In this document: positions 8,469-60,622 of the stretch, piece after piece
How the letters are laid out: every line of letters starts with the position of its first letter
How positions within the stretch are numbered: the stretch's first letter is position 1
NCBI GenBank assembly: GCA_973895155.1
Contig: OZ316899.1
Span: 14,821,934-14,885,933 of the forward strand
Direction: 5' to 3'
DNA length: 64,000 nt
Source: Marsupella aquatica
Lineage: Eukaryota; Plantae; Marchantiophyta
Translations under genes and position numbers: made by a program
Notes under the pieces: model-generated
Databases searched by the model: none
What the model was told of the DNA's origin: nothing
Seen by the model: the letters and a program-made list of their open reading frames with translations, nothing else

Positions 8469-8473
8469 TTTGC

Positions 8474-32968: not shown

Positions 32969-33290
32969 TGCTCCGCTGGTGCCTCGATTACTGATTCGGT
33001 TTGTGTCTCTAGGGTTGGCTCCTCGGCGGGCCTCTGCCCTTCCCTTTTGGCTGTAGTTTCCGAGAGATGGTCAGCCGCTGAAGGTCCCTGACTCACGATC
33101 TCTTGATCATCTTCGGGGTTGCTCCTTTCCCTTTCCGCTGACTCGGAAACTTCCAGCTCCATGCCCTCTGCTGTTGTCGGCCCTTCTCCCTCTGTGTGCG
33201 TGGGGGTGGGTGTCTCCTCCATCGTCGGGGTTTCGAGTAGTTCGCTGATAGTAACGCGTTTCTCGGTTTATCGTCCTCAAACTCATTTGA

Positions 33291-33782: not shown

Positions 33783-33848
33783 GTAATCCTCTAACGGGTA
33801 CCCCTTGATCGTTAGTTCTCGTCCTTGTTCATTTGTGCTTTCTTCTCA

Positions 33849-39295: not shown

Positions 39296-39517
39296 TTATC
39301 TTCTGGGTTAGCAAAACCTTTTCTCTGCCTTCAAGCAATATACTCAACGATCAGGTCTTTCTTTACAATGGTGATGTCAAGATCTTATTACTCGTTAATT
39401 TTCACAAAAACAGAGACCTTCTACTGTCTCCTTTACTTGATTAATGCTATAACTTTTGTTAATCAGTTCCTCTCTCTCCTTTGCTCAACTGCGGCTATGC
39501 CCTCTACGAAATGACTC

Positions 39518-40100
39518 CTATTCGCTTAAACTAGGAGTGCAGGCTTCTGGAGCCATGAGTTCCTCGTTAAAGCACATCGTTAATAACTGGTTTAACATAG
39601 AAAACTCAAAACTGTCATGTTGACTCCACATCATACATCTTGGGCAAGCTCCTGCGGTTTCCTCTAGTTTAGAACTTAATTTCCTAGCGATTCTGCCTAT
39701 ATGGAATGCTATCGCAACCGGGTACTCATTTCGATTCCAATGACACCATTCTAAGAGTTTTCTAAGGTCCTCCTTTCTCTTGGGTAGGCGGTACTGCATG
39801 TAGCCTTGAGGTAATCGATCACTTGGTGGCATGGTCGCTGCTGTAACCGCTGCTCCGAACAGAGGATTGCAAATGAATTGCTCGCCTCCTCACGTTCCAG
39901 GTTCCTCCATGCGCTTCTCGAAGTACCAACTCTGTGTGTGTGGGCGTGGTGTAAGCAATTATCATAACATCGCCTTCTCGTGCCCGACTTCTCCCGCTGG
40001 CTAGTATCGAGTGCTCTTTCTCGTTCAGTGTTGCTATGATTGCTGCTTCGGCATCCTTCTCAAAATAGAACATCGTCCAGAACTCCTTCGGCGAGTTCAT
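39518..40100 (-). CDS. Two small overlapping unknown ORFs between the PBS and gag of F (39819-40100, 39518-39832)
   Basis: Sense orientation, ATG starts, overlapping arrangement; no homology recognised. Confidence 0.35.
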
Positions 40101-40218
40101 GTCCCCCGTTCGCCTTTCTGGATTTGCGCGTTTCTCTCTTGGTTCGGACTGCTGGTCGTAGCAGTTGCTCCTCTTTCGGAACCCTCAACGAGGCATTCCC
40201 CAGTATGGTCACCAAAAA

Positions 40219-42085
40219 TGTTAAACGCCAACTTCGACCTTGCGATTAATGGCCGTTTAACTACCTTCTCCTCAGTAATCTCGTTTAAATGATTAACCGT
40301 CCTTCGAGAGGCGGCACTCCTTCTATCTCGACACAGTCCCCGTAAATGAATCCGACCAAGTGCTCTTGAATGTCGAGTTCTGTCTTCCACTTCTTAGGCA
40401 CTTCAGCCTCGGCCAACACCAACCCCTCTCTATACACAATCTCAATGAACCCACACCACTCACGGTAAGTGATCAAGCAAATTGGAATGTTCTCATATAG
40501 TAACTGACGGGAAATAAGATGGGTACCGATAGAACAGATCCACAGTTCCAGTGATCTTAAGGTAATCAAGGAGCAAGACTTGTCATCACTGCTGTCTACA
40601 TTCATGGTTTTTAGTAGCCGTGACCTGATTAAATCCGGCTGTCCTTGGAATCTGCCTGCCTGGCAATTGATTTCCGGATTGTGTGGGTGACTATGACAAG
40701 GTTACCCTAAGCAAGTACCCCAGTATCACGTTTACCCTTGTATGATGGAGGTGTATGACGACCAATGTATCGCCTTCAAAACACACTATCTCCAACCAGA
40801 CACTGCTTCTCACTAGCTGTCTGTTCAACCTATACCTTGAGGCGCTGGCCCGTAAGGTTCTGGTTCGCAATGAGACAATATTCATTCATCGTTGCGATTA
40901 ACGAGTAACAACTTGCTGCATAAGGCAAATTCCTTCTCTCTTTCTCTCTCTCTCTGATTCGACGTTCTCATTCACTGCTCAAGTGCGGACTTCACTCTGT
41001 TGCATTCATTCCAAACTCTCTCTTTATACTCAAAAACTACTCAACTGAGTAGGGACACTATTACAAAATTGCTGGTATTCATAAGGTGAGCGGAGCTCTA
41101 CCTTGCCCCAGACTTCTAGCAAAAAGTGACCGAGCGCCTAGCACTCCACAGCCTCTAAATACCTATGCCTCGTGTCCGTCTTCGCCCGAGGCCTCTACTA
41201 CTTCTTGGGGTGCGCCGATTACAGTTGGACGACTCGCGCCTCCTCTTTGATCTCCTTTGCTCATTTATCAAGAACGCTAACTAATGCCTACCAGAACGAT
41301 GAGTGGAAGCCAAGAACTGCTGATTACTATGTCAAGAAGTTCTGTCTTCCTGGTTACTGAATTGTGCAACGGCCTCCTTGATTCGCTTCGGTTGCGCCTG
41401 ATCCGGAAGCTTCCGGACTTCCGATTGTTAATCTTGCCATATGTGCCTCGACCTCCTGACTTCTTTCATCTTCCTTGGGGTTGCTCGGTTCGCCGGCCAT
41501 GATTACTTGTTCGGCGGTGATTAATCGCCACGTAATCCGCTGATCGTGGCTGTTCTCCCATCTTAGCAGCAGATTCCATTTCTTCCGCATGACCTTTCTA
41601 CAGAGTTCTTCGATGGCCTCGTCGGTGGTGAATCGTTGGCGGAACTCTTCGCCCTTCATTCCAAACAATTGTTGCCCCGCCGCATCCCATACACGACAAC
41701 TTCCTTCTTTGATCCGAATAGTGAACATGAACATAGGCACTCCTTCGCCTAGCGACTTACACTCATGAGCTAACCGATTCCTGCTAACGGGGGTTCCTAT
41801 ATTCGCCCCCCTTTGCCTTCTCTGTCGAGCTCTTGTGCCTAAGGCACATACTCTGCCATCTGCTAGTAGGCCATCACAGCCTTCATAGCAGAACTCAACT
41901 CCTACACGACCGTTAATCAAGATGATCGTCGCCTCCCCTACTTCCAGCCTTTCTGTCATCTCAACAAAATGAATAACCGCTGGTCTTTGCTTACTACTTC
42001 CTAAATACTCTTGGTTGACCTCTAGTTGACACTTCTAAACCTAAAAAAAACTATAATATCGCCGGTGTAATTTTTATCGTTTACA
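40219..42085 (-). repeat. 5' LTR of gypsy F (1867 bp)
   Basis: Direct repeat of 30286-32041 plus a further ~115 bp ending in tttaca. Confidence 0.93.
41354..41959 (-). CDS. LTR-encoded RPA70C-like OB-fold protein (5' LTR copy)
   Basis: Second intact 201-aa copy of 31423-32028. Confidence 0.6.
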   Translation of the reverse strand: MTERLEVGEATIILINGRVGVEFCYEGCDGLLADGRVCALGTRARQRRQRGANIGTPVSRNRLAHECKSLGEGVPMFMFTIRIKEGSCRVWDAAGQQLFGMKGEEFRQRFTTDEAIEELCRKVMRKKWNLLLRWENSHDQRITWRLITAEQVIMAGEPSNPKEDERSQEVEAHMARLTIGSPEASGSGATEANQGGRCTIQ

Positions 42086-42189
42086 CCCCCCAACTGGTCC
42101 CATTGGCAGTAGAACGTCGTGACTCACCACCACCACCACCACTCCCTCCTAACTGGCTAGGGGCACCATGACTAGCCGCTGGAGGACCT

Positions 42190-42730
42190 GAGTGGTGAGA
42201 GACCCCACCACCACCGCCTCCACTCCCTCCAGATGTGCTTGAGGCACATCCACCACCCCCAATGCTGCCTGCATGCTGAGAGACACCGCCACCACTGCCT
42301 GCACTCCCTCCAGACTGGCCAGGGGCATGTCGACCACCCCCAGTGCTGTCCGCATGTTGAGAGACACCACCACCACTACCTGCACTCCCTCCGGACTGGC
42401 CAGGGGCATGTCGACCACCCCTAGTGCTGCCTCCATGGTGAGAGACTCCACCACCACCGCCTGCACTCCCTCCGGACTGGCCAAGGGCATGTCGACCACT
42501 CCCAGTGCTGCCTCCATGGTGAGAGACTCCACCACCACCGCCTGCACTCCCTCTGGACTGGCCAAGGGCATGTCGACCACTCCCAGTGCTGCCTCCATGG
42601 TGAGAGACTCCACCACCACCGCCTGCACTCCCTCCAGACTGGCCACCCCCAGTGCGGCCAGAGTGCCAAGACCCTCCACCGTCGGCTGCACTCCCTCCAA
42701 CCTGGCCACCCCCAGTGCGGCCAGAGTGGC
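42190..42730. repeat. 81-bp tandem repeat (about 5-6 copies plus shorter derivatives), probably a Gly/Ser-rich coding tail of CACTA ORF2
   Basis: 27-aa periodicity in the translated frames; one minus frame reads GQSGGSAGGGGGVSHHGGSTGSGRHAL. Confidence 0.85.
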
Positions 42731-43879
42731 CAGAGCCTCCAGAGCCACTCCCAACTATGCCTAACTGCTGAGAGCCTCTAGAACACCCTTCCCCGTGGGG
42801 CTCTAATCGGCGAGACCCACCAACAGCATGTCGTGCAACAACATGTTGCAGGCCCTAAGTGTCAGCTCTACCAGCAACCCCTGATTGGTGTCGGCCACTA
42901 GAACCAACCCCTATGGCTCTCGACTGGTGTGCTCTAGGGGCCCGACTAGCACCACCTCTGCCAGCCCTACTCCGTGACGCTGGAACACCATGATCCTCAC
43001 CCCGTCAAGTCGAGTGGCAAGGACCACTAACACCGTCCCTAACTGCTCCAGACCGGCGAGATGTGGGTGCGGCCACAATTGACTCCTCTGGGCCCAACGA
43101 CTTTGCATCTGAATTGTTCGCCCCTAAGCCCTCCTTCGAGTCCTCACCCTCCGACCCCTCCTCCTCTGAGCCCTACATATATCCAACTAGCAATCCAGTT
43201 AGTGTATGCTCCATCTTACCACAGAATTTTCATCAACCAATTAAGACATTGCATTCAGAGGATTGTCCATACCGAACCCAACTCCTCCTCCATGTGAATC
43301 TTGAGAGCTCGCGGTCCATGCTTCTTAGCCAACTCCCTCTTGTCTGGTAAGATCGGCCGCCCATGCTCACGCTCCTACACCCCACACAAAATGGCCCCAA
43401 CATCAAATTGTCCCCCATTAGTCCCTCCCTATCACACCCCAAGTAGTCCTACATCCTCACACCCCCAAATACATGTACAATGGCCTTTGGATCCTACTAA
43501 CAAATCTACCAAGGATTACCGATAAAAATTCAAATTATCCGATTACCCAAGTATCGGACCCCTCGTGCTAAAATATCGGACACACTGTCCGAATGTTGAT
43601 CCGATACTGATACTATTGGATCATAATCGGACCCCAATTTCAAAAAAAGGTGTGATAACACTTCCAATTATGGGTCCGATACCGACAGAATTGGACCGGT
43701 ATCGAAAAAACCGGCCCAGGAAAGAAAAAATACAGTGCCGAGAGCGGGCCTGACTTGCAGGACTCACCTCGACAATAAGAAGGGACTAGCTTTGGGTTGG
43801 GGCTCTTTAGGCATACACAAGCCTCAGATGATCAAGAAAATTGAGGTGAGGAGCTTGGACAGAGGAGGGGGAGTACTTA

Positions 43880-45000
43880 CAAACTCTGCCTTGAGACGTT
43901 GCGACCCACCCCGCCCCATCCGTTGAGTGATTACTGGCCTATTGTCAACTCGAAGCAATGCTTTCAGGATTTGTGAGGGAGGGTCTCCAAGCTGAACTGA
44001 TCTTGCTTCCCAATGCTGCAGGTTGCTCTGAGCATGGCGGGTGTCAACAGTCTCCCCTGCTTGGGCCTTGGTGGCAAGCTCTTCTAATTCGGCCTGCCAG
44101 TACCGTCTTGCCTGCCAAGCTCAAACTTGTAGCTTGGTCTTGATCCAAGCTGCCCATACATCTGGTGGTAGATCAACTGGGCACCCCCTCTGCCTGATCA
44201 CCTCCTCATTTTCCTTGCATTCACCAAGGTATTTCCTGAGCTTCTCCCTGACATGGTTCCTTCTGTCTGCAAGTGAGAGGCTGATTTTTTTGATTCAAGA
44301 ACCTGTCATCAAGGAATGATCCATTGGAAAACCTCTCCTTCACCTGCTCACGAACTCTGAATTTCTCCTATTCATTTTGCTTCCCCCAGTAGTCTAACAC
44401 CCCAAAATGGGATCTAAGTACCTGCCCAAGCTGACTCCTGAAGAGATTATAGTTCTTGGCCCTGGGAGCTCCTCCACTATTCAAAAACAACTTTGGCCGC
44501 TTGCTTCGCTCCTCTGCTTGCTGTTTCTCCTCCTCTGCTCTCTTCCTCTCTGCAGCCCATGTTTCTTTACGCAGGGCTTTCTCTCTCTGTCTTGGTGAGA
44601 GGGCCTCCGCGGGGATGCTCCGCTTCTCATCCCTTTGCTTCCTCTTCTTTTCTTTCTCCCTTTGCTGCCTTTCCTTGAATGCTTTCTCAGCTTCTGAAAT
44701 AATTGTGCCCTTTGAAGAGTCAATCAATCCCTGTGTCAATGCAGCAACCTGTTGTGCAACTTCTATTGAGAGCCCTATTTGCGTTTGAAAAATGGCTCTC
44801 ATAATGTCCCCAAAGTTTTGAGATGGCCCGGCTCCATCTCCTGCAGATCCTCCGGCTCCCCCGACTGCTCTGGCTCCCCCGGCTCCACCTCCTGCCCCTC
44901 CATTGTTCCCCTCCATAGCCATAAGCTCCTCCCGGCCTTCAATTCCAGTTCGTGACCATGCACCTCCCCGGCTTTTACCAAAGAAAACATCTCCCGACAC
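43880..45000 (-). pseudogene. CACTA accessory ORF2 (TnpA/TNP1-like), first exon; the 3' part probably extends to ~30042 across gypsy F
   Basis: ORF 44368-45000 appears to continue past a stop and frameshift to MGRGGSQRLKAEF, followed by a gtaagt donor. Divergent from the transposase gene. Confidence 0.5.
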
Positions 45001-46247: not shown

Positions 46248-47162
46248 GTGCCTCGTAGGACCTCTCCTCCATTGGTCTCTAATGACTTATGGGTAAACAC
46301 ACTTTTGGCTGGTGCAAGAGAGTTGTTAGCAGCATCATCAGATCCCCCTCAATGTAGCCTCCCTTGTGTTGATCCGGAGACTATACCAGTTCCATCTAGG
46401 GTTGGTTGCACCCGAGCAGGTTCCCGAAGACAACGGCATCGTTATGAACCCTTGGGTGTGCATGAGACCGAGCACCAAGTTCTGCACCATACTCATAGAG
46501 TACCGCCAGGAGAGGACTATGTGGAAGTGGAAGGGAGGTTGGGGCTTTCATATGTCACTGGGAAGGCATTGATAGTCTTGAAGGATTTCTCATCTGAGAG
46601 ATTCAAAATACGCCCTGGCCTAACCATTGACACTCCTATCCACATATGGGGTCACCAATGGATAGTGAAGGCATCCTCCCTTGGTCCCGACATAGGATTT
46701 GGCGTATTTGCCTTGGAGGACATTTTGGTCCCTGCAAAGCCATGGCCCCGAGGTTATGATGGGGAGCACCTATTTCCATATATTGGTCCCGTATACACTT
46801 CAAAAAGTTGGAACATTCTATTGCGCCAACACCCATCTTGGGGTGTCTATGCATTGCAAATGGATTCTGATCCAGATGAGGTCATACAGAGGCCTTGGCA
46901 TTCTCGGATGATTGATGGGGACCCTGTTCGCTCTGACAACATAGCCGGGTACATCAATAGTACTCGTGGGAGAGGGAGAGGACTTAGGCCTAATGTTGAG
47001 TGGATACAAATATTTGGTCCACCTAGAGAGCCTTATTATGTAAAACACATGGATGACCATGTCATGACTGTAGCCATTACAACCATTAGGGCTGGCGAGG
47101 AGTTGTTTTGCGACTATGAGTGGGATGCTCCCAAGAAAGCATTCCTTTCTCGCCCTGTGTAG
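46248..47162 (+). CDS. SET-domain protein exon (putative lysine methyltransferase) within CACTA E
   Basis: VKASSLG..IGFGVFALEDI, PYIG, IDGDP..NIAGYINS, PNVEW, TIRAGEELFCDY; intact 304-aa frame after a tag| acceptor. Confidence 0.85.
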   Translation: MPRRTSPPLVSNDLWVNTLLAGARELLAASSDPPQCSLPCVDPETIPVPSRVGCTRAGSRRQRHRYEPLGVHETEHQVLHHTHRVPPGEDYVEVEGRLGLSYVTGKALIVLKDFSSERFKIRPGLTIDTPIHIWGHQWIVKASSLGPDIGFGVFALEDILVPAKPWPRGYDGEHLFPYIGPVYTSKSWNILLRQHPSWGVYALQMDSDPDEVIQRPWHSRMIDGDPVRSDNIAGYINSTRGRGRGLRPNVEWIQIFGPPREPYYVKHMDDHVMTVAITTIRAGEELFCDYEWDAPKKAFLSRPV

Positions 47163-47325: not shown

Positions 47326-49220
47326 AATGCGTATGTTCAACCAGATGTGGGGGTATTATCACAAGCAATGCGGCAACACCTTGTCGAGGCCATGGAAGAT
47401 TGGTGTAGGGCTCAAGCTTCAGCGAATAAAGATATCCCTCCTGAGCAAGTATCTAATGCCACCAATGACAGACTTGAGGATGAGAGGGCCATGGATGATC
47501 TCATGCACTAGTTCTATGACATAGAGAATGGTGACCATGGTATGGGTGATGCATTTGACACCACAGCACATGCTCATCATGACATTCCTTCACGTCGAGG
47601 TTCCCACTCTAGACAATGGGAGGAAGCTCGTGACCATGCACAAACAAGGATTTTTTAGGGGTCACAACTGTCTTGACTATCAGGAACAATGTTATTGTTG
47701 AACTTGGAACAAAGACATGGTGCAAGCAATCTCCTTCTTGATGATCTTTTCAGGACTTTGCATAGTCGGATTTTGCCAGAAGGGAACTGCTTGCCTAGTT
47801 CCTGGAAAGCAGCAAAAAAGGTGTTGAAATCCATAGGTCTCAAATACGAAGTCATACATGCTTGTGTGAATGATTGTGTTCTCTTTAGGGGGGAACACAA
47901 AGATGCCACTACATGTCCTACATGTGACCAACCGAGGTATCGAGAGGACATGCTCATTGGAAAAGTAGCACAGAAGGTCATGAGGTATTTTCCTCTTATC
48001 CCTAGATTACGGCACTAGTACCGATGTGCGGAGTTGGCTGAGTATACGGTGTGGCATTCCAAGAACCAGTCAGATATGACTTCAGATCCGCCCACCATGC
48101 GTATGATGGTGGACTCACCTGCCAATAGGTTTGTGGAGGACCGATGGGGTGAGTTCAAGACAGATCCACGTCATGTACGTCTAGGTTTGGCATCAGATGG
48201 GATCAGCCCCTTTGCATTGGCAGGGAAGGCCCAACCATACTCAGTTTGGCCAGTAGTCCTTACAAATTATAACATCCCTCCATGGATGGCCATGAAGAAA
48301 GGTCATTTGCTGCTCTCAATGATTATCCCAGGCCCCAAACAAGTAAAAAAGATTGATGTTTACTTGCAACAATTGTTGGAGGAGCTTCAACAACTATGGA
48401 GAGGAGTGGATTGCTATGATGGTTGAGTGCTTACGGGTGGTTTACCTCATGAATTTAAATTGAAAGCCATCTGTATGTGGACCATACACGATCTTCCGGG
48501 TATGTGGAAATATACCTCACCCCATATAAATTATGCATGGTTTGTCATTTCTGGATAATATACCTCACCCCATATTAATTATCATATATTGGACCCCTGG
48601 CCATTGTTTAATGTATGCAGTGGGTGTGAACATTGTAGGGTTTGGATATATCTCTGGGTTGCAGGTCTCGGGATACCGAGCTTGCCCAACTTGTGGGCCC
48701 GATTTGGAGGGAGTGGCTCGCCCAAAGTCTACCACCCTACGGAGATAGTTTACATTGGTCACACAAAGTATCTCCCCCCAGAGCATGAATGGAGGCGTGA
48801 CCCATTCTTATACGACACAGATGATGGCCAACCAGACACACGCCCTCAACCAGTGCCAAGGGATCCACATTATTGGAAAGATGTATGGGATAGAGTGACA
48901 GACCCGGATGATCCATTACAGTTGACTCGGTGTGGCATGACTCGATTGTCTGCATTAATGTCAAAGCTGCCATATTGGGCTGAGATGCCAATTAACCATT
49001 TGTTTGACCCTATGCACATTGAGGGGAATGTTGGGAGGTCATTGATTCGCCATCTATATGGAGAGAAAGACAACAACTAGAGAGAGAGTTGTGAGAAGAT
49101 GGGGATGCATGGCCCTCATGGGTTTTGGCCATCTATGGATCCTCCTAATGCCCCCCTTACTATTCACCCTCCTTGGGTATTGACCAGAGGTGAGCGGACT
49201 GAGTTTCGCAAACGTATAGG
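47326..49220 (+). pseudogene. CACTA TnpD/TNP2 transposase, 5' part
   Basis: IHACVNDCVLF..CPTC, YFPLIPRL, RLGLASDGISPF, YSVWPV, IIPGPKQ..IDVYL, WTIHDLP, intron ~48500-48638, ACPTCG, DPMHIEGNV; several stops. Confidence 0.92.
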
Positions 49221-49933
49221 TGTCGTGACATATAGTATCGTAGCCATAGTGTATCAAAAACATACAAGTCACCGGCAAGGCATATGTGCAAGCTGCTAGC
49301 AACCAACATGCATAGAAAAAGTCCAATCACATTCACAAGTGCCAAGAAAAAGCAAATGAAGTGGTATGTACATAGTGGAGGTGTAAACCTCTGTATAATA
49401 AAAGGCGTAAGAGAAACAATCGTACTGAAATCGAATCAAAAACCGGCGGGATGCCAAGATCGGTCGGGAGCATCTAACGAATCACTATGTGAATCCCGTG
49501 TACGGAACCGACGAGCACTGTCTGAGCTCTGTCAATAACGATTCAAGAAGAACTGAAAACCCATAAAGAAAGACATGCCCTAAGTAAACAAAGTCTTGGC
49601 GTCACACTAACAAGCGTGTTTGCTTCAAGAACGCCTGGCATTTGCTATAAGAACATGTTGCTAACTCAAGTAGTACACTAGCCCTAACTACATACCTAGC
49701 GGGCATGCGAGGGACATGCCGATGTGCATAAGAGGCACTATCCCTCAGCATGACAGCTGTCGTGACACATAGTATCGTAGCCATAGTGTATCAAAAACAT
49801 ACAAGTCGTCGACAAGGCATATGTGCAAGCTGCTAACAACCAACATGCATAGAAAAAGTCCAATCACATTCACAAGTGCCAAGAAAAAGCAAATGAAGTG
49901 GTATGTACGTAGTGGAGGTGTAAACCTCTGTAT
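49221..49933 (-). repeat. Composite 3' terminal repeat block of G (sense order R2-gc-R1-R2)
   Basis: Two copies of the 176-bp R2, one of the 359-bp R1, palindromic junction catgaca-gc-tgtcgtg at 49749-49764; G7 PPT at 49934-49940. Confidence 0.92.
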
Positions 49934-49972
49934 CCCCCCCAGATCACAGCCAAAAGGAGGGCTGAAGAAAAT

Positions 49973-50254
49973 TCAGGTAGCACGTGGAGCACAGGAAGGG
50001 CAAAACCATAACCCTTTTGGCACCTGGGTAAGTTCAGGCCAAAGGCAGAAAAGACGGTACCCTCCATTGCAATTGTCACACAGCAGCATCTGGTCAACAT
50101 CATCAATTTGCAAACACAATTTGCAAGGGTAGTCCATAGGTGGAATCCAAGTAGAAGTCACAATGGTGGGATCTAGGTTAGGCAAATGACAAGGGGCGCA
50201 ATTCTTGGCATTGTCAGCAATTGTGCACCCATCTGCCCCTTGTAACTCTAGCAC
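49973..50254 (-). CDS. PHD finger at the integrase C-terminus of G (frameshifted from pol)
   Basis: CKLC...MLLCDNCNGGY(R)LFCL.PEL..VPKGLWFCPSC matches C4HC3 with His changed to Arg. Confidence 0.9.
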   Translation of the reverse strand: MLELQGADGCTIADNAKNCAPCHLPNLDPTIVTSTWIPPMDYPCKLCLQIDDVDQMLLCDNCNGGYRLFCLWPELTQVPKGLWFCPSCAPRAT

Positions 50255-52815
50255 TCCAGATGGTCGAATAGCTTTAACCCTGAGAATAGTACGACTGGTA
50301 GAGGTGTCCAGGGTGTCGTTAGCTTGCCGCTACAAGTACACAAAATCTCCCACTTCAAACTTCCTGACCTTGGGCTGAAACGTGTGTGTGCATAACGCAG
50401 TGTGTCCCTGTGCTGTGCGATGGCCAAATTCTCCATGGCCATGGGCATAACCCTCCTGAATAGGGCAGCCCTCTCAAAGATCACATCAAACCAAGTCACA
50501 GCTGAATCCAAGTCTACCACCTGAAGCATGTGAGTAGCAATAGCAGAAGGTGGAACCGGGTGACGACCAAACAACAAGAAGTAGGGAGAAAAGTTAGACA
50601 GTGATGCATGTCTGGACATCCTATACCCCATGGCAATGTAGGGTAAGGCCAGGTCCCAATCCTCCTTGTTTTTGGTGAGGCAAATCTTCCGGAGACCCTT
50701 CTTGCATGTCTGAACCATGCGCTCTGCCAAGCCATCTACCTGTGGGTGATCTCGTGATGTCCGGCGATGATCAATGAGGGCCTGATCAAGCATCTCCTGG
50801 AACTCTCCTCTAAACTCTGAGCCATGGTCAGTGAGACATTCTGCACAAGCTCCAAAGCGGCTGAGAACTTGTTGCGGGAATGCCTGGCTGGTGCTACGGG
50901 AGGTCTTATCCGGCAATGCCACAAGTTCTATCCACTTGGAGAAATGCTCTATCATGATCATGATGTAGAGATTACCCCGAGACGTGAGGGGTAATTCTCT
51001 AGCCAAATCACATGACCAGCGATAAAACATGCCCTGAATAGGGAGTGGATGAAGTGTGGGTTGCCAAGATGTGAAAGAAGTCCTCACCCTATCACACTGT
51101 TCACACCGGGCAATAACATCTCGAACCTGGCCATGCATGCCTCTCCAATGATAATGAGGGACCCAAAGGCTGTAAGTCCTCTTAACGCCAAAATGACCAA
51201 GCTCAGAATGTACCTTACGGATAAGGCCAACCCTCTCATGAATGGGTGGAACCACCACTTCCCTGTCTGGCAAGCAGCGCACGAGATGATTTCCCTTCCA
51301 CAAGTAACGCTTGGACCTTTGCTGAATTTGGTCTCTCTGGGTTGCAGTAACATGTATGGGGTACTCCCCATGCTGCAAAAATCTCAGAGTGTCGTTGTCC
51401 TCCCATATGTCCACCACAGGTTGGTCAACAACGTAGCATGGTAGCAAAGCAAGATAGGTAGATGCATGAAATGTAGGCAGGATGGAAACCTGGTCAAAAT
51501 CCTGCCGTGCATCTGAGGAATCATCAGAGGCAATCAAAGGGCTGCGGGACATAGTGTCAACATTTTGATGTGTCACACCAGGCCTATGAATTACCTCAAA
51601 ATCATACTCCTGGAGTATGAGCGCCCAACGAGCAAGCTTGCCAGTAAGCTTGTCGTTGGTCATCAACCACTTCAAGGGCTGGTGGTCGGTGTAGAGAACA
51701 AACTTGGTCCCATAGAGGTAGGGCCTGTAATGTATGACAACCCACACAACAGCAAGGCATTCACCCTCATAAGAAGAATAATGACTCTCTGCCTGATTGT
51801 TGCTCCTGGATGCATAGGCAATGACGTACTCTTTACCTTCCTCATCATGCTGGCCCAGAATGGCACCAATCCCAAGGGCACTCCAATCTGTGTGTAGCAC
51901 AAAGACCTTGCTGAAATCAGGTCTTCTCAGCACCGGGTATTCTGAGAGCTTCTCCTTCAAAGTGGCAAATGTTGCCTCAGCATCTGTACTCCATGTCCAA
52001 GTCACATTCTTTTTCAACAAAGCATACAATGGGTGTGCAATGGTGCTGAAATCTTTGATGTAGATCCGATAGTAATTGCACAACCCAATAAAACTCCTCA
52101 AAGTGTGAACATTGGTAGGAGTGGGCATTTCCAAGATGGATACCACCTTGGCCCAGTGAGCCATGGTTCCATTTGGAAGAATGCGGTGCCCAAGGTATAC
52201 TACTGATCTGACAGAAAGTTCACACTTCTTGGGGTGTATCTTTAGGTTCACCTTCTTAAGCCTCATGAATAGCTCCTCAAGGTCAAGTAGATGCTGGTCA
52301 AATCCTTTGCTGTGGACCAACACATCATCAATGTAACATTTCAGAAACTCAGCACCTTGAAGAACCTGGTCCATGACTCTTTGAATGAATATGGGCGCAT
52401 TCTTCAAGCCAAATGGCATCACCAACCACTCCCATAGTTGGTTACTACCATGGAAAGTTGTTTTCTTGCGGTCCTTTGCAAGCAACAAAATCTGGTTAAA
52501 GCCTTGCCTTAGATCCACAAGAGTGAAGATGTCTGATTCTCCAATGCTGTCAAATAGCTCCTCTGGCCGTGGCATGGGATACCTGTCCTGGGGTGTGACC
52601 AGGTTCAGTGGCCTGTAGTCCCCACACATGCGCTTCTCTGTCCACAATCCACTAGAATCCTTCTTTGTTGGCATCACTGTAGCTGCTGCAAAATCTGATG
52701 TAGATGGCTGAATAAGACCAGCTTCATATAACTCTTGGCACCTCTCATCCACCAGCTGCCACTCATGCTTACTCAAACGATGTCTCCGCCTGAAGATAGG
52801 TGTTTCATCAACCAA
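50248..52815 (-). CDS. pol: RT-RNase H-integrase of G
   Basis: RMCGDYRPLN, MPFGLKNAP, CYIDDVLV, HTDWSALG, HSELGHFG..CEQC, WSCDL, TDHGSEF, GLAER. Confidence 0.95.
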   Translation of the reverse strand: MVDETPIFRRRHRLSKHEWQLVDERCQELYEAGLIQPSTSDFAAATVMPTKKDSSGLWTEKRMCGDYRPLNLVTPQDRYPMPRPEELFDSIGESDIFTLVDLRQGFNQILLLAKDRKKTTFHGSNQLWEWLVMPFGLKNAPIFIQRVMDQVLQGAEFLKCYIDDVLVHSKGFDQHLLDLEELFMRLKKVNLKIHPKKCELSVRSVVYLGHRILPNGTMAHWAKVVSILEMPTPTNVHTLRSFIGLCNYYRIYIKDFSTIAHPLYALLKKNVTWTWSTDAEATFATLKEKLSEYPVLRRPDFSKVFVLHTDWSALGIGAILGQHDEEGKEYVIAYASRSNNQAESHYSSYEGECLAVVWVVIHYRPYLYGTKFVLYTDHQPLKWLMTNDKLTGKLARWALILQEYDFEVIHRPGVTHQNVDTMSRSPLIASDDSSDARQDFDQVSILPTFHASTYLALLPCYVVDQPVVDIWEDNDTLRFLQHGEYPIHVTATQRDQIQQRSKRYLWKGNHLVRCLPDREVVVPPIHERVGLIRKVHSELGHFGVKRTYSLWVPHYHWRGMHGQVRDVIARCEQCDRVRTSFTSWQPTLHPLPIQGMFYRWSCDLARELPLTSRGNLYIMIMIEHFSKWIELVALPDKTSRSTSQAFPQQVLSRFGACAECLTDHGSEFRGEFQEMLDQALIDHRRTSRDHPQVDGLAERMVQTCKKGLRKICLTKNKEDWDLALPYIAMGYRMSRHASLSNFSPYFLLFGRHPVPPSAIATHMLQVVDLDSAVTWFDVIFERAALFRRVMPMAMENLAIAQHRDTLRYAHTRFSPRSGSLKWEILCTCSGKLTTPWTPLPVVLFSGLKLFDHLEC

Positions 52816-52827
52816 CTCAATGGAGAA

Positions 52828-54558
52828 CTACATGGTCTTGCACTTACCCAAGTCCTTCATAGAGAAAGCAAACACGTTCTCATGCTTGAGGAGAAAATTT
52901 AGCAGCTGGTCCTTCTGTCTTTTACTCAGGTGGTTGCCCATGATGAATGTGTAGTTGGCAACACTAGGAATAGGACCTGATGTACTCGTGCTTGAAGAGC
53001 CAGAAGTGCCAGCCTCTCCACTGTTCAAGCTGCTAGCATGCTGCTGATAAGGTGATGAGGCCTCTCTAAGGCCTGTTGAACCTGTTACGCTGGTCTCATC
53101 CACACCATGAAACTCAGAAATAATATCATCCACATTACAAGGGACCTCCTCCCCCCCAACACTTGGACTGAAGCGATGAGTGTTGAATAGAGGTAAGTGC
53201 ACTTGGTCTGGATGCCATGTAGCAGCACCATGGAGTGGTAGGGCTGGAACTCCTGATGCTGGATGAATGTACATCTGAAAAAGGATGCAAGTGACCAAAA
53301 GCCAAGTGAGAGCATTAAGATCCATTACCCTGCCAAGTAAAGCATTCCTGGCCAGCTTGGTGATTTTGGTGTGGCCTGTAGTACCGAGTTGGAAGCCCAT
53401 AGCCCGTTCACTTTCCTCAGGACTAGGTTCATCCCATGTACCGGTAGAATGTCGATAAATCAGGCCAGGACCTTCACCCTGAAAAGCATGTGCACCTGGA
53501 AAGGACACAAATGTAGGCCAAGCAGCACGGGGCTGTCCAATGGTATTGGCTGGATACCAAGGTGCAGGCTCTTGCCGTGTAACTGGTTGGCAAGAACTGT
53601 CAGGATCCAAAATCTGGTCCACTGTGAGGTTAGTGTCCCTGGATGTGTGGTGAAGAGCTAACTCCAGCAAGGAAGGTGGTGCAAGGTTAGTCCAAAAGTT
53701 ACGAAGACGATGTGCATAAGAACCACAGTGCACTGCATCAATGAGAAGGGGTGGTCCCAAGTAGTGCTGGACCACACTGAAATCCTCTTTGACCTGTGGA
53801 CGTTGGTCAAACTGAGATGGAGTATTCTCAATGATATAACCAACAGCAAGATAAAGGGATTGAGCCCAGGTGAGAATCTGAACCAATGCTGTGAAAAGGC
53901 CAGAACGAGAATCATGCAATCCAGCACTGTGACCAGCAGCTGAAAACCCTTGGCATTCCCAATCAGCTATGATCAAATCAAGGGAGCCAAGAAGGGTTAA
54001 GTGTCGGTGCTGGACAAGCTGGATATCTGGAGGGAAGAAAGAAAATGCAGACTTCCATGCACTGTGTGGAAACTGCTGGGGAAATCGCTTTGAAAATTCC
54101 AGCAAACGGGATTCAGCCACGTGCCTTGCACCTGGATCAATGTCCACGTAGATGTACTGCTTCACCACCATGCCAGACTATAGGAGAGCTTCCAGGCCTG
54201 TAGAAATGCCACCAAAAAGCTCAAGCAATGTAAAGCCATCCGGAGGAGGAGTCCATGTAACTGGTGCGCTCAAGATTGGGGCTATCGGTTGTCCATTATG
54301 CTGCCCAAGGTCCTCAAATTTGCGCAATGCAGCCACCAAAGGTCCATGGGCTGCTTGGAGCCGTAGTACCACCTCTGGTTGATGATCCACGCTGATGGAA
54401 AGTGTTGCTATACGTGCAACAACCACCTCATCATCATCCTCCTCAATCCAATCTTGCAATGGGTGGTTGACATAGGTAGCTGTGTGCACTGCTTTCAACA
54501 CACAGTGGTGAGCCATAGGTGTATGGGCACCATGCAAATCAAGTGGAATGTAGCCCAA
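52828..54558 (-). CDS. C5 DNA-cytosine methyltransferase domain (DNMT3-like) within the G polyprotein; one in-frame TAG
   Basis: Motif I LLELFGGI, II YVDID, III DI, IV DLIIADWECQGFS, V GLHDSRSGLF, VI IIENT, VIII AHRLRNFWTNL, IX ERAMGF, X RNALLG. Confidence 0.92.
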
Positions 54559-54606
54559 GTGTGAGCCATCCGTATGCCAATCAACTCTGTAGTATGCGTG
54601 CTCATG

Positions 54607-55218
54607 CTAGTTGTCAATGGTAAAACCTGGTGGGAACAAAGCCTCCTGGCCAATGAGCACATCATACGTAGTGGCATTGGTAACCAAACATCCGACTGGG
54701 AAATGCAATTCCTGATCTGTACCTCCATTAAAAGTGAGAGTGAGTAAAGTAGAACTCTCACCCAGCACATCCTCCACAGTGCCACTAGCAGTCCGAATGT
54801 GCCACCTGGATTGTTGTAAATGATCAGTCAACAGTCCCATCTTCTTGGCAAACTGAATGCCCAATATCACTGGTTGAGCGCCTGTGTCTAGCATGACCAC
54901 CTTAGGAGTGTGACCCTCCAACTTGACCGCTGAATTCCTGTTGTCAACAATGGCAATGGTGGTGGAAACTAAAGTCCTGTCACTAGGCACCACTTTTGGC
55001 AAATGATGAGGTACCTTGTAAAGGGAGTTAGTGTCCACGGTCTTCCCACTCAACAGCATAGCCAGGAAAGATGGAGCAGCATGACCAGAATCAAGTGTAG
55101 CTCTGGTCACACAATCTGTAGCAATACTGTCATCTCTACCACTGGAAATTGGTACTGGGATAGCCAAACCGGCCAGTGGAAGCATGTAATGGAGAAGAAG
55201 AAGGTCTAGCATGTACAT
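54607..55218 (-). CDS. Aspartic protease of G
   Basis: VMLDTGAQPVILG ... YDVLIGQE. Confidence 0.88.
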   Translation of the reverse strand: MYMLDLLLLHYMLPLAGLAIPVPISSGRDDSIATDCVTRATLDSGHAAPSFLAMLLSGKTVDTNSLYKVPHHLPKVVPSDRTLVSTTIAIVDNRNSAVKLEGHTPKVVMLDTGAQPVILGIQFAKKMGLLTDHLQQSRWHIRTASGTVEDVLGESSTLLTLTFNGGTDQELHFPVGCLVTNATTYDVLIGQEALFPPGFTIDN

Positions 55219-55499
55219 GAGATTGGACCTCCAAAACCAGTGGCACAGGGACTGATGAAGAATGCAGTGAGCCCTCTAGCACTCTCATGACAGCTCTAGC
55301 ATGCAGTTGTAAATCATGGCAACTGAAAAGTGGAGTTGTAAGAATCCTTTGTGCCATACCAAAGGTGAAATGCTCAAGCAGCTCAGGAGAAACAACTCCC
55401 TATGAAATGTCAGCAGCACCTGATGGTGGAATGGATGTAGCTGCAGCTCCCTCCCCCCTCGCCAACAAGGTGCGCTCTTCAGCAAGTGTGAGTGGCTGA

Positions 55500-57131
55500 A
55501 AAGATTGGGGAAGACAGCCCGAGCTCCCCTGGCTCTAGTCATAGGACCGGTAGCAAGACCATCAGCCTGTACAATGTGGCGTGTGGAAGCAATACGAGAG
55601 GCAGCACTAGCTTGCTGGTAAGCAAAATAGGATGGGCAGAATGAATCTGAAAATTCTGCTATAAGGCGAGGCTGTGTAGCAGAGGACAGCACACACTCAC
55701 CCATATGAGCATCAAATGGCAAGCCATAGAAAGAGCGGGGTAGAGGTGCTGAACTGTCAGTGGTGCCTGGGCCAGGGATGGGTTGCACGTGACCAGCCGG
55801 TTGAGAAGGACCAGCAGAGGCAGTTGACTTGCCTTTGATGTTGGCAAGTTGGGCACGTAGGGACTCAACCTCATGAGTCAGAGACTCGAGTTGAGTTGCC
55901 TGTGCGTTGTGAGCCTCCTTCTGAGCTGGTTGCTTCTGTTGCTGCTTGGGCGATTTGTTGGCACCAGGTGCTTTGCCACTGGAAGGAGGAGCAACTGAGG
56001 CAATAGGAGCCCTCCTAGCTGGTGGGGGAGTGGAAGCAGGAGTAGGATGAGGGGCCTGTTGTCATAGCTGCTTCCCCTCTGGGAATTTGGCAAAACAAAC
56101 TGCCCCCAAGTGACCCACTTTCCCGCAAAAATCACAAGACAGGTCCTCAGCAACAATATCACATTCATTAGCCTTGTGATTGGGGTTACCACAATAGTTG
56201 CAAGATGGCAGCATGAAAGTAGCATGGGCTGGCTTGGTCTTGGAACCATACTGTGGCACACGGGAAGGGGTGGCCAGTGTAGGGGCAGCAGCCTGATACC
56301 TGGATCGCGGTGGACGTGCAATATTGGCCTCATAATGTGCATGGGCCAACTCAAGTTTCTCAGCAGTGTCATAGACATTGAGCAGGGTGTAGCTGTCTCC
56401 AAACTCTAAGAATACTTGCTGCAACACTTGCAAATGGAGAGCTGGTGTGCCCTCCAATGCGCAAAGATAGTGATGAGCAGCTTCCAGGTCAGTGATGCTC
56501 TGGGTGTCCTCCTTCAGCTTGAGAAGCCGATGATACATCATCTTCAAGGTTTCATCGCGCTACCTCACAAAGGTGACCAACTGCATGATTTTGTCAGCAC
56601 TCTTGATTGAGAATTCCAATTCAAGAACCTGGAAAAACTCAGCCACTGGATCAGCAAAGGCAGGAAAATCAATGGTGGGAGAAATGCCTGATGTAGCCTG
56701 TGCCAAGACAATGGGAGTAACTGGCGCAATGGTAGGAACTGGAGTAGGAGGGGAAGTGGCAGGAGCAGCAGCATGGGCTGCAATGGCATTCTGTAAGGCC
56801 AATTGTGAGGCTACCGTAATTGCACTGGCATAGGTAGGGTTAGGCAACTGTGTGACAGCAAGCAGCCATTGAGAATGTTGCTCATACACATCCAAAGCCT
56901 CATGGTGCACATACCTGGCTAGCTCTTAAATGCAAAAGCATTTGTGAAATTGTTGTCGTACTTCAACTCCAATTCGTAAATGACAGTGTAGAAAGTGGAT
57001 TTGAACTCACATAAAGAAACAGTGCCTGGCCACCCATTGAAGCGTTCAATGCGGCCAGATGAGTGGCTGGCGTCCATGCTGTATGTTGGTGAAGCAGGAA
57101 CAATCACAGATGCAGAAGGGGTAAATGGCAA
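55500..57131 (-). pseudogene. gag: Gag of G, fragmented
   Basis: Two zinc knuckles, CNYCGNPNHKANEC and CDFCGKVGHLGAVC; collinear ORF pieces 56919-57131, 56560-56910, 56062-56547. Confidence 0.8.
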
Positions 57132-58932
57132 TGAAGTGATAGCAGGCTTTGGAGTAGTGGTGAAGCGACCACCAAATTGAGCAGGATTGCGTGGTGTGGG
57201 TGCTGCTGCTATCTGTGGATGTCATTGAAATTGCCGAGACTCCAATGAAATTGGCACCAATGGTCGTGGATCACTCCGTAAATGGTACCTAGGTGTTAGT
57301 GGCGATGAGTTGCTACCTCCTGGCTCGTCGGCTGACATGTTGCATGCTCACTCGGGGTGCCAATGGGAAAGAAATTGACAAGAAAAAGGAGTGGCAACCC
57401 CAAGGCTAGGAAATGAAACCCACGAAGGAGGCAAACGGTGTAAGGCAGCAATGTGTCGAATGTGTAAACACACAGAAAAACCGTCACAAAGAAAAACCGT
57501 AGGCAAAGAAAAGCCCCTTAAAAACTCCGGAAAGGCCTAGTGTTGGCGGCAATAAAGAAATCCGGGAAAAGAAAATAGAAGTGGCCCCCCCTTAAGTGTA
57601 TACATCGGGCCCCTATGTGGACCCAAAACTGGCAGGAAAAGGGAAACCAAAGAGGCGCGCGTCTGCGGGAAAAGAAAACCAGGCCAAGTGGGACACAGTA
57701 TCGGGGCACGGTGCTCTATGGAGGTCGTCGATGGCAAGGTAAGAGCAAACAGAAAGAAACGGGCCCTACAAAATGTGAAAGGGGCCCCCTAAAGTGTATA
57801 CACATCAGCCCGATGTGGACCTGAGAGATGGAAACAGGTCGATCATCGTGCGGCAAAAAAGCAAGACAAGCCAAAAAAGGCAAAAATAAAACGGGAAGAG
57901 TGAGGCGAAGAAAAAGAAATGAGCCCTGCATAGGGCTTCGCACCCCCCTCCCCCCTCATTATGAGCTCCCATAGCCTCCTTGGGGCTTCGTGCCCTGGCA
58001 GGCCTAAGTACTCCCGTGTGAGGGAGTTCAAATTGAACTCCCCTCCCCTCCTTTAATGCAGCTTGGGCCTTGTGCCCTCTCCTGGCACTCTCGCTCCCCC
58101 TCATGGCCTCCTTTTATTGCAGCATAGGGCCTCGTGCCCACTCCTTGCACTCCTGCTCCCCTCCTCCTGGCTTTAATGCTGCTGAAGGGCTTTGTGCCCT
58201 GCAAGAGGACTTCCGAAAGGAGTCTAAGTTTACTCCCCCCTCTTCAATGCTGACAGTGGGCTCCGTGCCCTACAGAAGGACTCCCAAAGGGGGTCGACGT
58301 TAACTCCCCTCTCTCTTTAAATCTTCATAGGGCCTCGTGCCCTCTCCTTGCGCTTGTGCTCCTGGTCGGCTCCCCCTCCTCGCGCTTAATTAAATGCTGG
58401 CCAAGATGTTGGCAACGGGCGCAGGAGGAAGAAAAATGCCGAAGGGAGTGCGCGCGGCCCTATGCACGACCCAGGGGCAATGATGAGCCCCGCATGTGTA
58501 TACACAGGCAGGACTGGGAGGCACCTCGCGACGGTAGCTGCGAGGGGAGGCAAAATGAAACAACGGCCGGTGAGAGAAAAGAAAGAACAGGACCCCAAAG
58601 GGTCATGAAAACGTAAGGCGAAGGGAAGGTGGTCGCGCTGCGACCGGAAAACACCAAATATGGCCCGAAAAAGGTCGTGCAGTCAGCAACTGGCAGCCAT
58701 AGTCGAAAGCAGCAAAGGGTCCCCTGATGCAACCGGAAAGCAAAAGTCAGGCTCCAACGGGAGCGTTATGTGTATACTTATGTTAAGTATACACATAACA
58801 CCATATTGAACCCATAATTTCAACTTGTCCCTCCGATGTCCGTCGAAGAAATTGCAATGGCTTCACCAAAAATTGTTGAAATTGTCACGAGCAATCTTCT
58901 TCCCCTCACCGCTATCTCAGCAGTTCTTCTTG

Positions 58933-59291
58933 AATAAAGGGCGTGAGAGAAACAATTGTATTGAAATCAAATCAAAAACCGGCGGGATGCCAAGATCGGC
59001 CGGGAGCATCTAACAAATCACTGTGAGAATCCTGTGTACGGAACCGACGAGCATTGTCTGAGCTCTGTCAACAGCGATTCAAGAAGAACTGAAAACCCAC
59101 AAAGAAAGACATGCCCTAAGTAAACAAAGTCCTGGCGTCACACTAACAAGCGTGTTTGCTTCAAGAACGCCTGACATTTGCTATAAGAACATGTTGCTAA
59201 CTCAAGTAGTACACTAGCCCTAACTACATACCTAGCGGGCACGCGAGGGACATGCCGATGTGCATAAGAGGCACTGTCCCTCGGCATGACA
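58933..59291 (-). repeat. 5' terminal repeat R1 of G
   Basis: 359-bp direct repeat of 49397-49755. Confidence 0.93.
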
Positions 59292-59295
59292 TAGG

Positions 59296-60622
59296 GTCAA
59301 TGAGGTTTCCCACTGGTTATGGTGCCAATCTTCGTAAGGCATTTGGGGGTGATGATTCTCCAAAATGGCCATCTTACCTGAAAACACATGATTTTCATTG
59401 GTTACTCAAACATATCATTCCAGTTGCAATTATTGGATTGGGTAGTGAGGATCTTCGAGATGCCCTATGGTCATTAGGTAAGCTCTTGAGGTGGGTGTGT
59501 CAGAAATAGGTGAATGAGGATGAGATTGCAGCGATGGACCTTTTTGGAGTGGAGGTATTGTGCAAGTTGGAGAGGGCACTCCCTCCTTCATTCTTTGATG
59601 GTCAAGTTCACTTCCTCCTCCACCTAGTGCGTGAGGTTGCGATTGCAGGGCCAGTACATTGTCGTTGGATGTACTGGGTAGAGCGGTATATGGGAGTGAT
59701 GAAGTCATATGTGTCAAATCGTGCAAGAGTGGAAGGTAGCATTGCTGAGCGTCATCTTGGAGCAGAGAGCATGTTTTATTGTACAAACATTGTAGCTACA
59801 CTTGATCCCAGAGCTCCAAGGGGCTGGATAGACGAGGCATCAAGGGAAGCAGACTTTGAGGATGACCGTCTCACAGGGGCAAAGGGAGAACAACTTATGG
59901 GCTCAACTGAGCGTCTTCAACTTACTACATTTATGTTGTATAACTCGCCTGAGATTGTGGGAGATTGGACAAGTTTTTATGAGGAGGAAAAGGCAAATAG
60001 TCGTCGGCCACGCAACTTCCCCAAGTTTGTCCCATACATGAAGGCAAAGTTGACAGAGATTGATGCCTTGTTGGAGCAAGGGGAGAGTGTGTCAGACTTC
60101 CCTTTGGTTACAGACAGTCTTCGCACCTTGGTTCATGGACCATTACTTACGGTGACAACTTGGACAGCCATGTGGTCAAAGGGAAGACATTTTTGTGTGC
60201 AACGACTTGATGACAAGAGGGCAGCTACACAAGATTGTGGGGTCATGGGTTGGTTCACCCAAGATTCACAAAGTAGCATATCTGATAGGAATCCAATACG
60301 CTCTATGGTGGCCCACTATGGAAAGATTGAAGAGATATTGAGTGTGAAGTACCATGCGCACACCACTTTGGAGGAGGTGGTGTTGAAGTGCAAATGGTTT
60401 CGGATGAACCTTGTTGGCCAAAACCGAACTTGCGAAGAAGATGCTTGTGGGTTCACACGGTTGAAGACAGGTGCAAATAGTGTCATTAGCTCAACTTGGA
60501 GAACCTCTGATCCATTTGCATTCCCCAATCATCTTGAGCAGGCCTTCTATCTTCCCTATCCCGATGATCCTGAGTGGTCCATTGTCATGAGTTATATTCC
60601 ACGATCACGATCCATAGTCTAG
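59296..60622 (+). pseudogene. CACTA TnpD transposase, 3' part (DUF4218/DUF4216-like)
   Basis: FPTGY, LKTHDFH, PPSFFD..VH.LLHLV.E..IAGPVHCRWMYWVERYM, NRARVEGSI, HYGKIEEI, KCKWF, DPFAFP..QAFY. Confidence 0.92.

Follow-up and report, generated by a model that had tools for sequence, protein, structure and literature searches.

Evidence for a degenerate Gypsy-type retrotransposon with a DNMT3-like methyltransferase domain inside Pol in the liverwort Marsupella aquatica

Introduction

Does a land-plant retrotransposon carry a DNA methyltransferase of its own and, if it does, what kind of enzyme is it and what might it do for the element? The question arises from a 64,000-nucleotide stretch of the liverwort Marsupella aquatica (GenBank assembly GCA_973895155.1, contig OZ316899.1, positions 14,821,934 to 14,885,933 of the forward strand), which is called the window here and whose first letter is position 1 of all window coordinates. 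A sequence-only reading had proposed that a Gypsy-type element in it encodes a C5 DNA methyltransferase within pol, and this was borne out, the Pfam domains of such an element being found in order and in one frame. The 10,071 bp at 49221-59291 on the minus strand are very probably a degenerate copy of a Gypsy-DNMT3 retrotransposon, homologous to KnitGypsy-Dnmt3 of Klebsormidium nitens and lodged inside a CACTA transposon. Since this published homologue matches it in architecture and in its unusual repeats, and since the window copy is dead, the novelty at first attributed to the locus was overstated. The main added value of the present analysis lies in a wider host range, in the Glu-Cys state of the catalytic motif and in precise element ends with target duplications.

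Organization of the pol frame

Protease, methyltransferase, reverse transcriptase (RT), RNase H and integrase share a single minus-strand frame that runs from 55218 to 50248 (1,656 codons) and is broken, in translation, by stops at codons 204, 347 and 797. All three stops are TAG, and at each of them the relatives carry a sense codon that is one transition away. Pfam was run separately on the four stop-delimited pieces of this frame; broken frames were read through only as X. The order protease-RT-RNase H-DDE integrase is that of a Ty3/Gypsy pol, with the methyltransferase (DNMT) placed between protease and RT. The coding features are listed below in element orientation; the relatives named there are L005, on a metagenome contig, and L007, a locus of Calypogeia fissa, and omega is the ratio of nonsynonymous to synonymous change (dN/dS).

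55219..58932, minus strand: gag region, fragmented; its DNA is similar to, and collinear with, gag of L005 and L007
54610..55218, minus strand: aspartyl protease piece; domain at about 54637-54927 with an LDTGA motif (PF13975, E 2.8e-7; PF13650)
54607..54609, minus strand: first in-frame stop, TAG (translation); relatives read through here
54235..54606, minus strand: protease-DNMT spacer without Pfam match, conserved yet faster evolving (omega 0.18-0.28)
53287..54234, minus strand: putative DNMT3-like C5 methyltransferase core, motifs I-X (PF00145; DNMT3A the best PDB match), with the second stop, TAG, at 54178-54180
52831..53286, minus strand: DNMT-RT linker with a Ser/Thr/Gly-rich stretch, and start of the RT region (translation; omega 0.11-0.26)
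52828..52830, minus strand: third in-frame stop, TAG (translation)
51940..52827, minus strand: RT (PF00078, RVT_1, E 1e-26, on the 859-residue piece)
51226..51939, minus strand: RNase H and connection (PF17917, RT_RNaseH, E 3e-38; PF17919)
50344..51225, minus strand: integrase, H2C2 zinc finger and DDE core (PF17921, Integrase_H2C2, E 1.4e-12; PF00665, rve, E 1.3e-11)
50330..50383, minus strand: damage zone with a frameshift at about 50344-50383 and a stop at 50330-50332 (alignment of the L005 integrase-PHD open reading frame (ORF); both frames translated)
49991..50125, minus strand: PHD finger at the integrase C-terminus (PF00628, E 6e-9, in ORF 49976-50254; stop at 49973-49975)

The gag region has a weak zf-CCHC match, a possible zinc knuckle, at about 56158-56205 in ORF 56065-56547 (21.1 bits against a cut-off of 20.8), and the 142-residue second piece of the pol frame gave no Pfam match. 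The description of the locus as one frame with three TAG codons holds from protease to integrase but not for the PHD finger, before which the frameshift and the further stop intervene; the alignment of the L005 integrase-PHD ORF stays in frame -2 as far as 50344 and is in frame -1 from 50383 onward. Because of the three TAG codons between protease and integrase, one of them within the methyltransferase, and of the frameshift and extra stop ahead of the PHD finger, five disabling lesions altogether, the window copy is a dead fossil. Similarly, the extent of 52828-54558 first given for the methyltransferase does contain the domain, but the catalytic core occupies only 53287-54234, the rest being spacer, linker and the start of RT. 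The proposal that the order protease-DNMT-RT-RNase H-integrase-PHD is ancestral stood up well, since the collinear arrangement recurs in K. nitens, Closterium, C. fissa and two metagenome contigs of plant-like character. The polyprotein of the window element once read gag-protease-DNMT3-like methyltransferase-RT-RNase H-DDE integrase-PHD finger, with a probable CCHC knuckle in gag.

The methyltransferase domain

A match to PF00145 (DNA_methylase) had been named beforehand as the test of the methyltransferase, and the 449-residue piece of the window gives one at 23.8 bits (cut-off 22, E 3.6e-5), its relatives scoring 25-45 bits. The motifs stand in canonical order: FGGISTG (I, ELFGGISTGLEAL), DWECQGFS (IV), IIENTP (VI), AHRLRNFWTNL (VIII), ESERAMGF (IX) and LLGRVMD (X). 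Motif I lies just upstream of the second TAG, and this stop splits the domain between motifs I and II. The weak score of the window piece taken alone, and nothing else, speaks for the methyltransferase being a local accident, that is, a host DNMT3 fragment, a nested insertion or a misassembly in one copy. However, at least seven independent loci, drawn from K. nitens, Closterium, C. fissa and environmental contigs, have this order in this frame. The domain is not bordered by repeats or target duplications, and it is under purifying selection. Rather than being confined to a single copy or drifting neutrally across the family, the two outcomes that were to have refuted the initial reading, the domain is carried by many copies and is constrained; a local chimera is effectively excluded.

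As to the kind of enzyme, the window piece alone, compared with the PDB, matched DNMT3A catalytic domains best (E ~1e-3). When a family profile of 34 members was searched against the PDB, it ranked DNMT3A first (1.4e-20), then DNMT3C and DNMT3B (~1e-18; DNMT3B ~4e-18), DRM (6e-11 to 3e-8), M.HhaI (4e-7) and finally DNMT2 (~0.09), with no match to DNMT1 or CMT. We have also employed an AlphaFold (AF2) model of P0156, a 59%-identical relative whose domain is without a stop. The core of this model (residues 85-415) has a predicted local distance difference test (pLDDT) score above 90, whereas pLDDT is low in the protease-DNMT spacer of the modelled relative. In a Foldseek comparison of the model with the PDB, the top matches were all DNMT3A/B/C methyltransferase domains (target TM 0.80-0.83, E 5e-16). 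Because of the profile ranking and of these structural matches, we call the domain DNMT3-like: with its canonical motif order, it is predicted to be closer to DNMT3 than to DRM, DNMT1/MET1, CMT, DNMT2 or the bacterial enzymes.

The same comparisons bear on the idea that the domain methylates RNA, either the element's own transcript or its primer, and not DNA. De Mendoza et al. raise this idea for a LINE-borne DNMT (PMC5890265), and no tRNA-type primer site was recognised in the window element. However, the nearest sequences and folds are those of the DNA enzymes DNMT3A/B/C, the tRNA enzyme DNMT2 appearing only at E ~0.09, and the motif VIII-IX region aligns over its full length with DNMT3 in the fold search; we consider an RNA methyltransferase very unlikely.

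Across 165 domain sequences the catalytic Cys is invariant (165/165), the motif VI Glu is found in all but one (164/165) and the two Arg residues of motif VIII in 158/165 and 157/165, while the second Gly of motif I is present in 131/131. The residue that precedes the catalytic Cys is more variable: it is Glu in 102 of the 165 and Pro in 51, with both states in both architectures of the family described below. The window has Glu-Cys instead of the Pro-Cys dipeptide of motif IV, and K. nitens has the Pro state (FPCQ). The sequence-only reading was right that the catalytic Cys is kept within WECQ, which turns out to be a family trait and not decay; Glu-Cys is a widespread, maintained state rather than damage in the window copy.

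Perhaps, however, the methyltransferase-like domain is now a DNA- or chromatin-binding module that no longer methylates and that aids integrase targeting along with the PHD finger. The exchange of Pro for Glu in the catalytic Pro-Cys, seen in the window and most of its relatives, would fit such a module, as would the outcome of a yeast assay in which dinoflagellate DIRS enzymes produced CG methylation and the K. nitens Gypsy enzyme produced none, a result that its authors considered inconclusive (PMC5890265). Nevertheless, a module that only binds needs none of the residues that are kept (the Cys, the motif VI Glu, the motif VIII Arg pair and the Gly of the S-adenosylmethionine (SAM) loop). 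Moreover, canonical Pro-Cys is present in the K. nitens enzyme, so that its failure in yeast is not tied to Glu, and human DNMT3B likewise failed in the same assay (PMC5890265). A binding-only role is, in our view, unlikely.

Selection on the domain was measured by pairwise Nei-Gojobori comparisons on codon alignments anchored to the window frame. In the deep pairs (the window against L005, L006 and L007, and L006 against L007, L006 being a second C. fissa locus) the proportion of synonymous differences (pS) is 0.70-0.74, which is at or near saturation, and dN of the DNMT core is 0.17-0.24. The corresponding omega values, approximate for this reason, are as follows.

DNMT core: ~0.07-0.12
protease: 0.09-0.13
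RNase H: 0.06-0.09
RT and integrase: 0.04-0.08
spacer and linker: 0.11-0.28

The sole unsaturated pair, L005 and the metagenome contig L003 (dS ~0.3), a comparison that blends selection before insertion with decay after it, gave omega values of 0.27 (DNMT core), 0.31 (RT), 0.25 (RNase H) and 0.36 (integrase). Because the value for the DNMT core in this pair matches those of RT, RNase H and integrase, the methyltransferase appears to be constrained like the other pol enzymes, which the element cannot do without. In this lineage a DNMT3-type domain belongs integrally to Pol and is under selection.

Terminal repeats and insertion site

The ends of the element do not have the form expected of a Gypsy element. 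The termini are of the TG...CA type (TGTCATGCC and GTCACGACA) and are flanked by a short target duplication, both Ty3/Gypsy features, but there is no identical long terminal repeat (LTR) at each end. Instead, the window, L005 and L007 all have a split arrangement, X1-coding-Y1-X2-Y2, that follows an A-coding-B-A-B plan. In element orientation, the window features are these.

59296..60622, plus strand: CACTA-type transposase gene, right part (DUF4218, E 4e-29, and DUF4216 in ORF 59510-60622; residues 270-321 of a Transposase_21/DUF4218 protein at 59621-59773)
59292..59295, no strand: target-site duplication CCTA, 5' side, matching 49217-49220
58933..59291, minus strand: repeat X1 (first A), beginning TGTCATGCC, 94.7% identical to X2
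49934..49940, minus strand: G-run TCTGGGGGGG, polypurine-tract-like, abutting Y1 and kept in the window, L005, L006 and L007
49758..49933, minus strand: repeat Y1 (first B), ending GTCACGACA, 96.1% identical to Y2
49756..49757, minus strand: GC dinucleotide between Y1 and X2, completing the palindrome GACAGCTGTC, i.e. the right end joined to the left end
49397..49755, minus strand: repeat X2 (second A), 94.7% identical to X1
49221..49396, minus strand: repeat Y2 (second B); the element terminates in GTCACGACA
49217..49220, no strand: target-site duplication CCTA, 3' side, matching 59292-59295
47962..49216, plus strand: CACTA-type transposase gene, left part (weak Transposase_21 in ORF 48589-49080; residues 6-76 of the same Transposase_21/DUF4218 protein align at 47962-48183)

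The element thus interrupts a CACTA-type transposase gene. The Y1/X2 junction, GTCACGACA-GC-TGTCATGC, is conserved in four copies despite the divergence of most of X and Y. The near-palindrome GTCACGACA-NN-TGTCATGC, which amounts to both termini joined, lies at 49745-49768 in the window, at 14395-14415 in L005 and at 16186-16205 in L007. Duplications of 4 bp flank three of the copies (CCTA in the window, GGTC in L005 and CACC in L007), and downstream of X1 there is a short A/G-rich motif that is common to three copies. As the repeats of L007 are 99.3-100% identical, its insertion in C. fissa is very recent.

Two other readings of these ends were tried and rejected. An ordinary LTR, taken as either Y+X or X+Y, is at odds with both the 5' end and the target duplication. 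An affiliation with the DIRS elements was rejected because the element has a DDE integrase (rve, Integrase_H2C2) and target duplications; PF00589 tyrosine recombinase is absent. The layout could be copied by way of a circular or tandem intermediate that the integrase would cut at the palindrome.

The insertion site also bears on the notion that the plant has domesticated such an element and uses the locus as a gene of its own. Non-angiosperm land plants do keep DNMT3 genes (PMC6453930). Against this stand the five disabling lesions, the terminal repeats, the target duplication, the location inside another transposon and the multi-copy nature of the relatives within one genome; a domesticated gene is, like the local chimera, effectively excluded, and a degenerate Gypsy-DNMT3 copy remains the preferred reading.

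Relatives and host range

In an exhaustive HMMER scan of public sequence data with the 449-residue piece, 1,179 cluster representatives matched at E<=1e-3, of which 220 reached E<=1e-30; polyproteins of 1,300-3,400 amino acids are numerous among the matches. Two architectures were found: type a, in which the DNMT precedes RT, and type b, which is ordered RT-RNase H-DNMT-integrase-PHD. Type a is that of the window and of the metagenome contigs L003, L004 and L005, and it also occurs in three Closterium proteins, one of which reads CCHC-protease-DNMT-RT-RNase H-integrase with a clear CCHC. The two C. fissa loci, L006 and L007 (GCA_965154635.1), are likewise type a and follow the window element in collinear order, with 70-78% identity in DNA; at this level the window is probably not from C. 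fissa itself. In K. nitens, type a is found on DF238327.1, where a single tblastn alignment at 36% identity joins protease to integrase with the window polyprotein; this contig carries GAQ93235.1 (KFL_013780020), the product of a neighbouring gene. The K. nitens proteins P0264, P0267 and P0272, considered as homologues, were set aside; they are without a DNMT, which lies in a neighbouring gene on the same contig.

Type b occurs in many environmental GC-rich contigs and in a chlorophyte protein, annotated 'pol [Scenedesmus sp. PABB004]' (P0009, KAF8056149.1). It is the larger clade and includes L001 and L002; L001 has a separate upstream ORF of 1,795 amino acids with no Pfam match on record. 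The PHD finger is present in L005, L006, P0214 and the type b relatives as well as in the window.

A DNMT tree (FastTree, midpoint-rooted, and read as topology apart from branch supports) separates types a and b. The window groups with the C. fissa copies in one clade; the L005 group is its neighbour, and the remaining type a sequences, Closterium and K. nitens among them, lie further out. Among named sequences, those closest to the window DNMT and RT come from C. fissa (66% and ~81-82%, respectively) and Sphagnum, and Sphagnum proteins are 84-85% identical to L005. A PPR-E-DYW gene, at 17244-18536 of L005, adjoins the element on this 55-kb metagenome contig. Such genes encode land-plant organelle RNA-editing factors, and its presence therefore shows that there is plant nuclear DNA in the environmental assembly; this DNA is probably Sphagnum-like. 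Judged from the sequence, a land-plant host of the window element, most likely a bryophyte, is suggested by these nearest relatives, by its place beside the C. fissa copies in the tree, by the DUF4218 and DUF4216 of the CACTA transposase and by the angiosperm relatives of a Tat-like Gypsy element nearby.

In full-text literature searches, to which most subscription journals lay outside the scope, Gypsy-DNMT3 was described only for K. nitens (PMC5890265), and no report of copies in liverworts, mosses, Closterium or Scenedesmus was found. Later papers cite Gypsy-DNMT3 as belonging to 'streptophytes' (PMC12344493; bioRxiv 10.64898/2026.05.21.726589).

Comparison with known systems

The nearest described system is KnitGypsy-Dnmt3 (PMC5890265), which, like the window element, has Gypsy domains and a DNMT3-type domain within the Pol ORF; the two also have in common the order protease-DNMT-RT-RNase H-integrase, the A-coding-B-A-B repeats and purifying selection on the domain. 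That repeat plan is the DIRS arrangement, and KnitGypsy-Dnmt3 has it alongside its Gypsy domains (PMC5890265). The two differ in that amino acid identity across pol is only ~36%, motif IV is FPCQ in K. nitens and WECQ in the window, the named sequences nearest to the window element come from a liverwort and Sphagnum rather than from a charophyte, and the window copy is broken. In the window element a PHD finger follows the integrase, and the K. nitens contig ends before the corresponding point. De Mendoza et al. (2018) assign the K. nitens homologues to a divergent clade related to DNMT3 (PMC5890265).

SymbioDIRS-Dnmt3 of Symbiodinium (PMC5890265) also has a DNMT3-like domain in Pol and A-coding-B-A-B repeats, and two domain orders coexist in it, much as types a and b do in the present family. 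It uses a tyrosine recombinase, however, and makes no target duplication, whereas the window element has a DDE integrase, TG...CA-type ends and a 4-bp duplication; SymbioDIRS-Dnmt3 and KnitGypsy-Dnmt3 have been treated as independent acquisitions (PMC5890265). The EpiLTRs of Cymbomonas and Euglena are LTR elements that likewise combine a cytosine methyltransferase with a chromatin reader, but theirs are a DNMT4-related enzyme, accompanied by an adenine methyltransferase, and a chromodomain; their authors consider the acquisition distinct from that of the streptophyte Gypsy-DNMT3 (bioRxiv 10.64898/2026.05.21.726589). Chromoviruses, too, have a histone-reader domain fused to the integrase C-terminus, but it is a chromodomain, whereas the window element has a PHD finger and, in addition, a DNA-modifying enzyme.

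Among cellular enzymes, the DNMT3 group (animal DNMT3A/B/C; in plants, for example, PpDNMT3b, PMC6453930) gives the best profile and fold match and has, like the window domain and unlike DRM, a canonical, unrearranged motif order. The window domain differs from it by lacking PWWP, ADD and the plant DUF, by having Glu at the Pro of motif IV and by residing in a retrotransposon polyprotein with a PHD finger at the far end of the integrase.

Possible function

In live copies, the domain would be a SAM-dependent cytosine-5 methyltransferase, made as part of Pol and probably freed by the element's own protease at the flexible spacers. It could then act on the element's cDNA, on the fresh insertion or on nearby chromatin, while the PHD finger borne at the C-terminus of the integrase would read histone tails and so place the complex; this combination of PHD finger and methyltransferase resembles that of ADD and methyltransferase in animal DNMT3. 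In this way the element would set its own state of methylation without waiting for the host's, and the possible benefit could lie in either direction, camouflage as methylated self or self-limitation. Self-methylation of cDNA has already been proposed by de Mendoza et al. 2018 (PMC5890265). We hold this mechanism to be plausible, but at rather less than an even chance.

Several observations weigh against the reading as a whole or weaken its support. The only published trial of a Gypsy-borne DNMT3, that in yeast, gave no methylation and was called inconclusive (PMC5890265). The window and 102 of the 165 domain sequences have Glu for the Pro of the Pro-Cys motif, and a tRNA-type primer binding site was looked for after X1 and none was seen. 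With regard to selection, most pairs are saturated at synonymous sites, and the one pair that is not mixes the record of selection with that of decay. Finally, CpG depletion fits methylation but is silent on which enzyme methylates, and the flanks of the relatives in other genomes are equally depleted.

CpG content was tried as a sign of self-methylation and rejected. The observed/expected CpG ratio of the element is 0.39 (0.23 in the DNMT part), with TpG+CpA at 1.41; the other three intact LTR elements in the window reach 0.56-0.77 for CpG. As said, flanks in other genomes show as much depletion, and the K. nitens homologue shows none (1.16).

A bolder proposal, which we consider doubtful, is that these elements form a clade of green plants and green algae with an unusual mode of replication. 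Its DDE integrase would cut the palindromic GACA-NN-TGTC end-to-end junction in a circular or tandem intermediate, which would explain both the permuted A-coding-B-A-B repeats and the target duplications, and the elements, still active in bryophytes, would write their own methylation marks with a DNMT3-derived enzyme to which the Glu-Cys catalytic loop gives a changed activity or specificity.

Other contents of the window

The whole 64-kb window consists of nested plant-type transposons, and its contig is not human. No host gene was found in it, and Rfam detected no RNA gene; the other long ORFs have only transposon domains or no match, save for one sub-threshold PAN2_N. A Tat-like Gypsy element occupies 30286-43915 on the minus strand, with LTRs of ~2.7 kb that are 97.7% identical. 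Because its gag ORF (38351-39295) and its pol ORF of 1,459 amino acids (33849-38228) are both intact, this element may have been recently active. An exact look-up of the pol protein gave no entry; its best database relative is only 42% identical, and the named relatives are angiosperms. One of its LTRs contains an 81-bp minisatellite of ~7 units (42112-42741), while the other is without the expansion.

Between the Tat-like element and the CACTA remnant there is a 304-residue ORF with a SET domain (PF00856, E 7e-7) at 46248-47162 on the plus strand. It has no PDB sequence match and is a candidate for either a host gene exon or a transposon-captured fragment of a histone methyltransferase. The remaining elements are a chromovirus-type Gypsy at 15670-24947 on the plus strand (LTRs 94.5% identical, chromodomain in ORF 22532-23074), a Copia element at 4756-12619 on the plus strand (LTRs ~94% identical) and a further Copia fragment at 26735-28404 on the minus strand.

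Significance

Cytosine methylation is the main means by which plants silence transposons, and for this reason a transposon that encodes a de novo methyltransferase turns the usual roles around. Published knowledge of Gypsy-DNMT3 is based on one charophyte species. The lineage is now found also in a liverwort, where it has been recently mobile, in Sphagnum and in Closterium, and in a rearranged form in a chlorophyte; the window copy itself adds one host genome to this list. Together, these provide tractable hosts, and natural enzymes of both the Pro and the Glu type, in which to ask what a transposon gains from having a methyltransferase.

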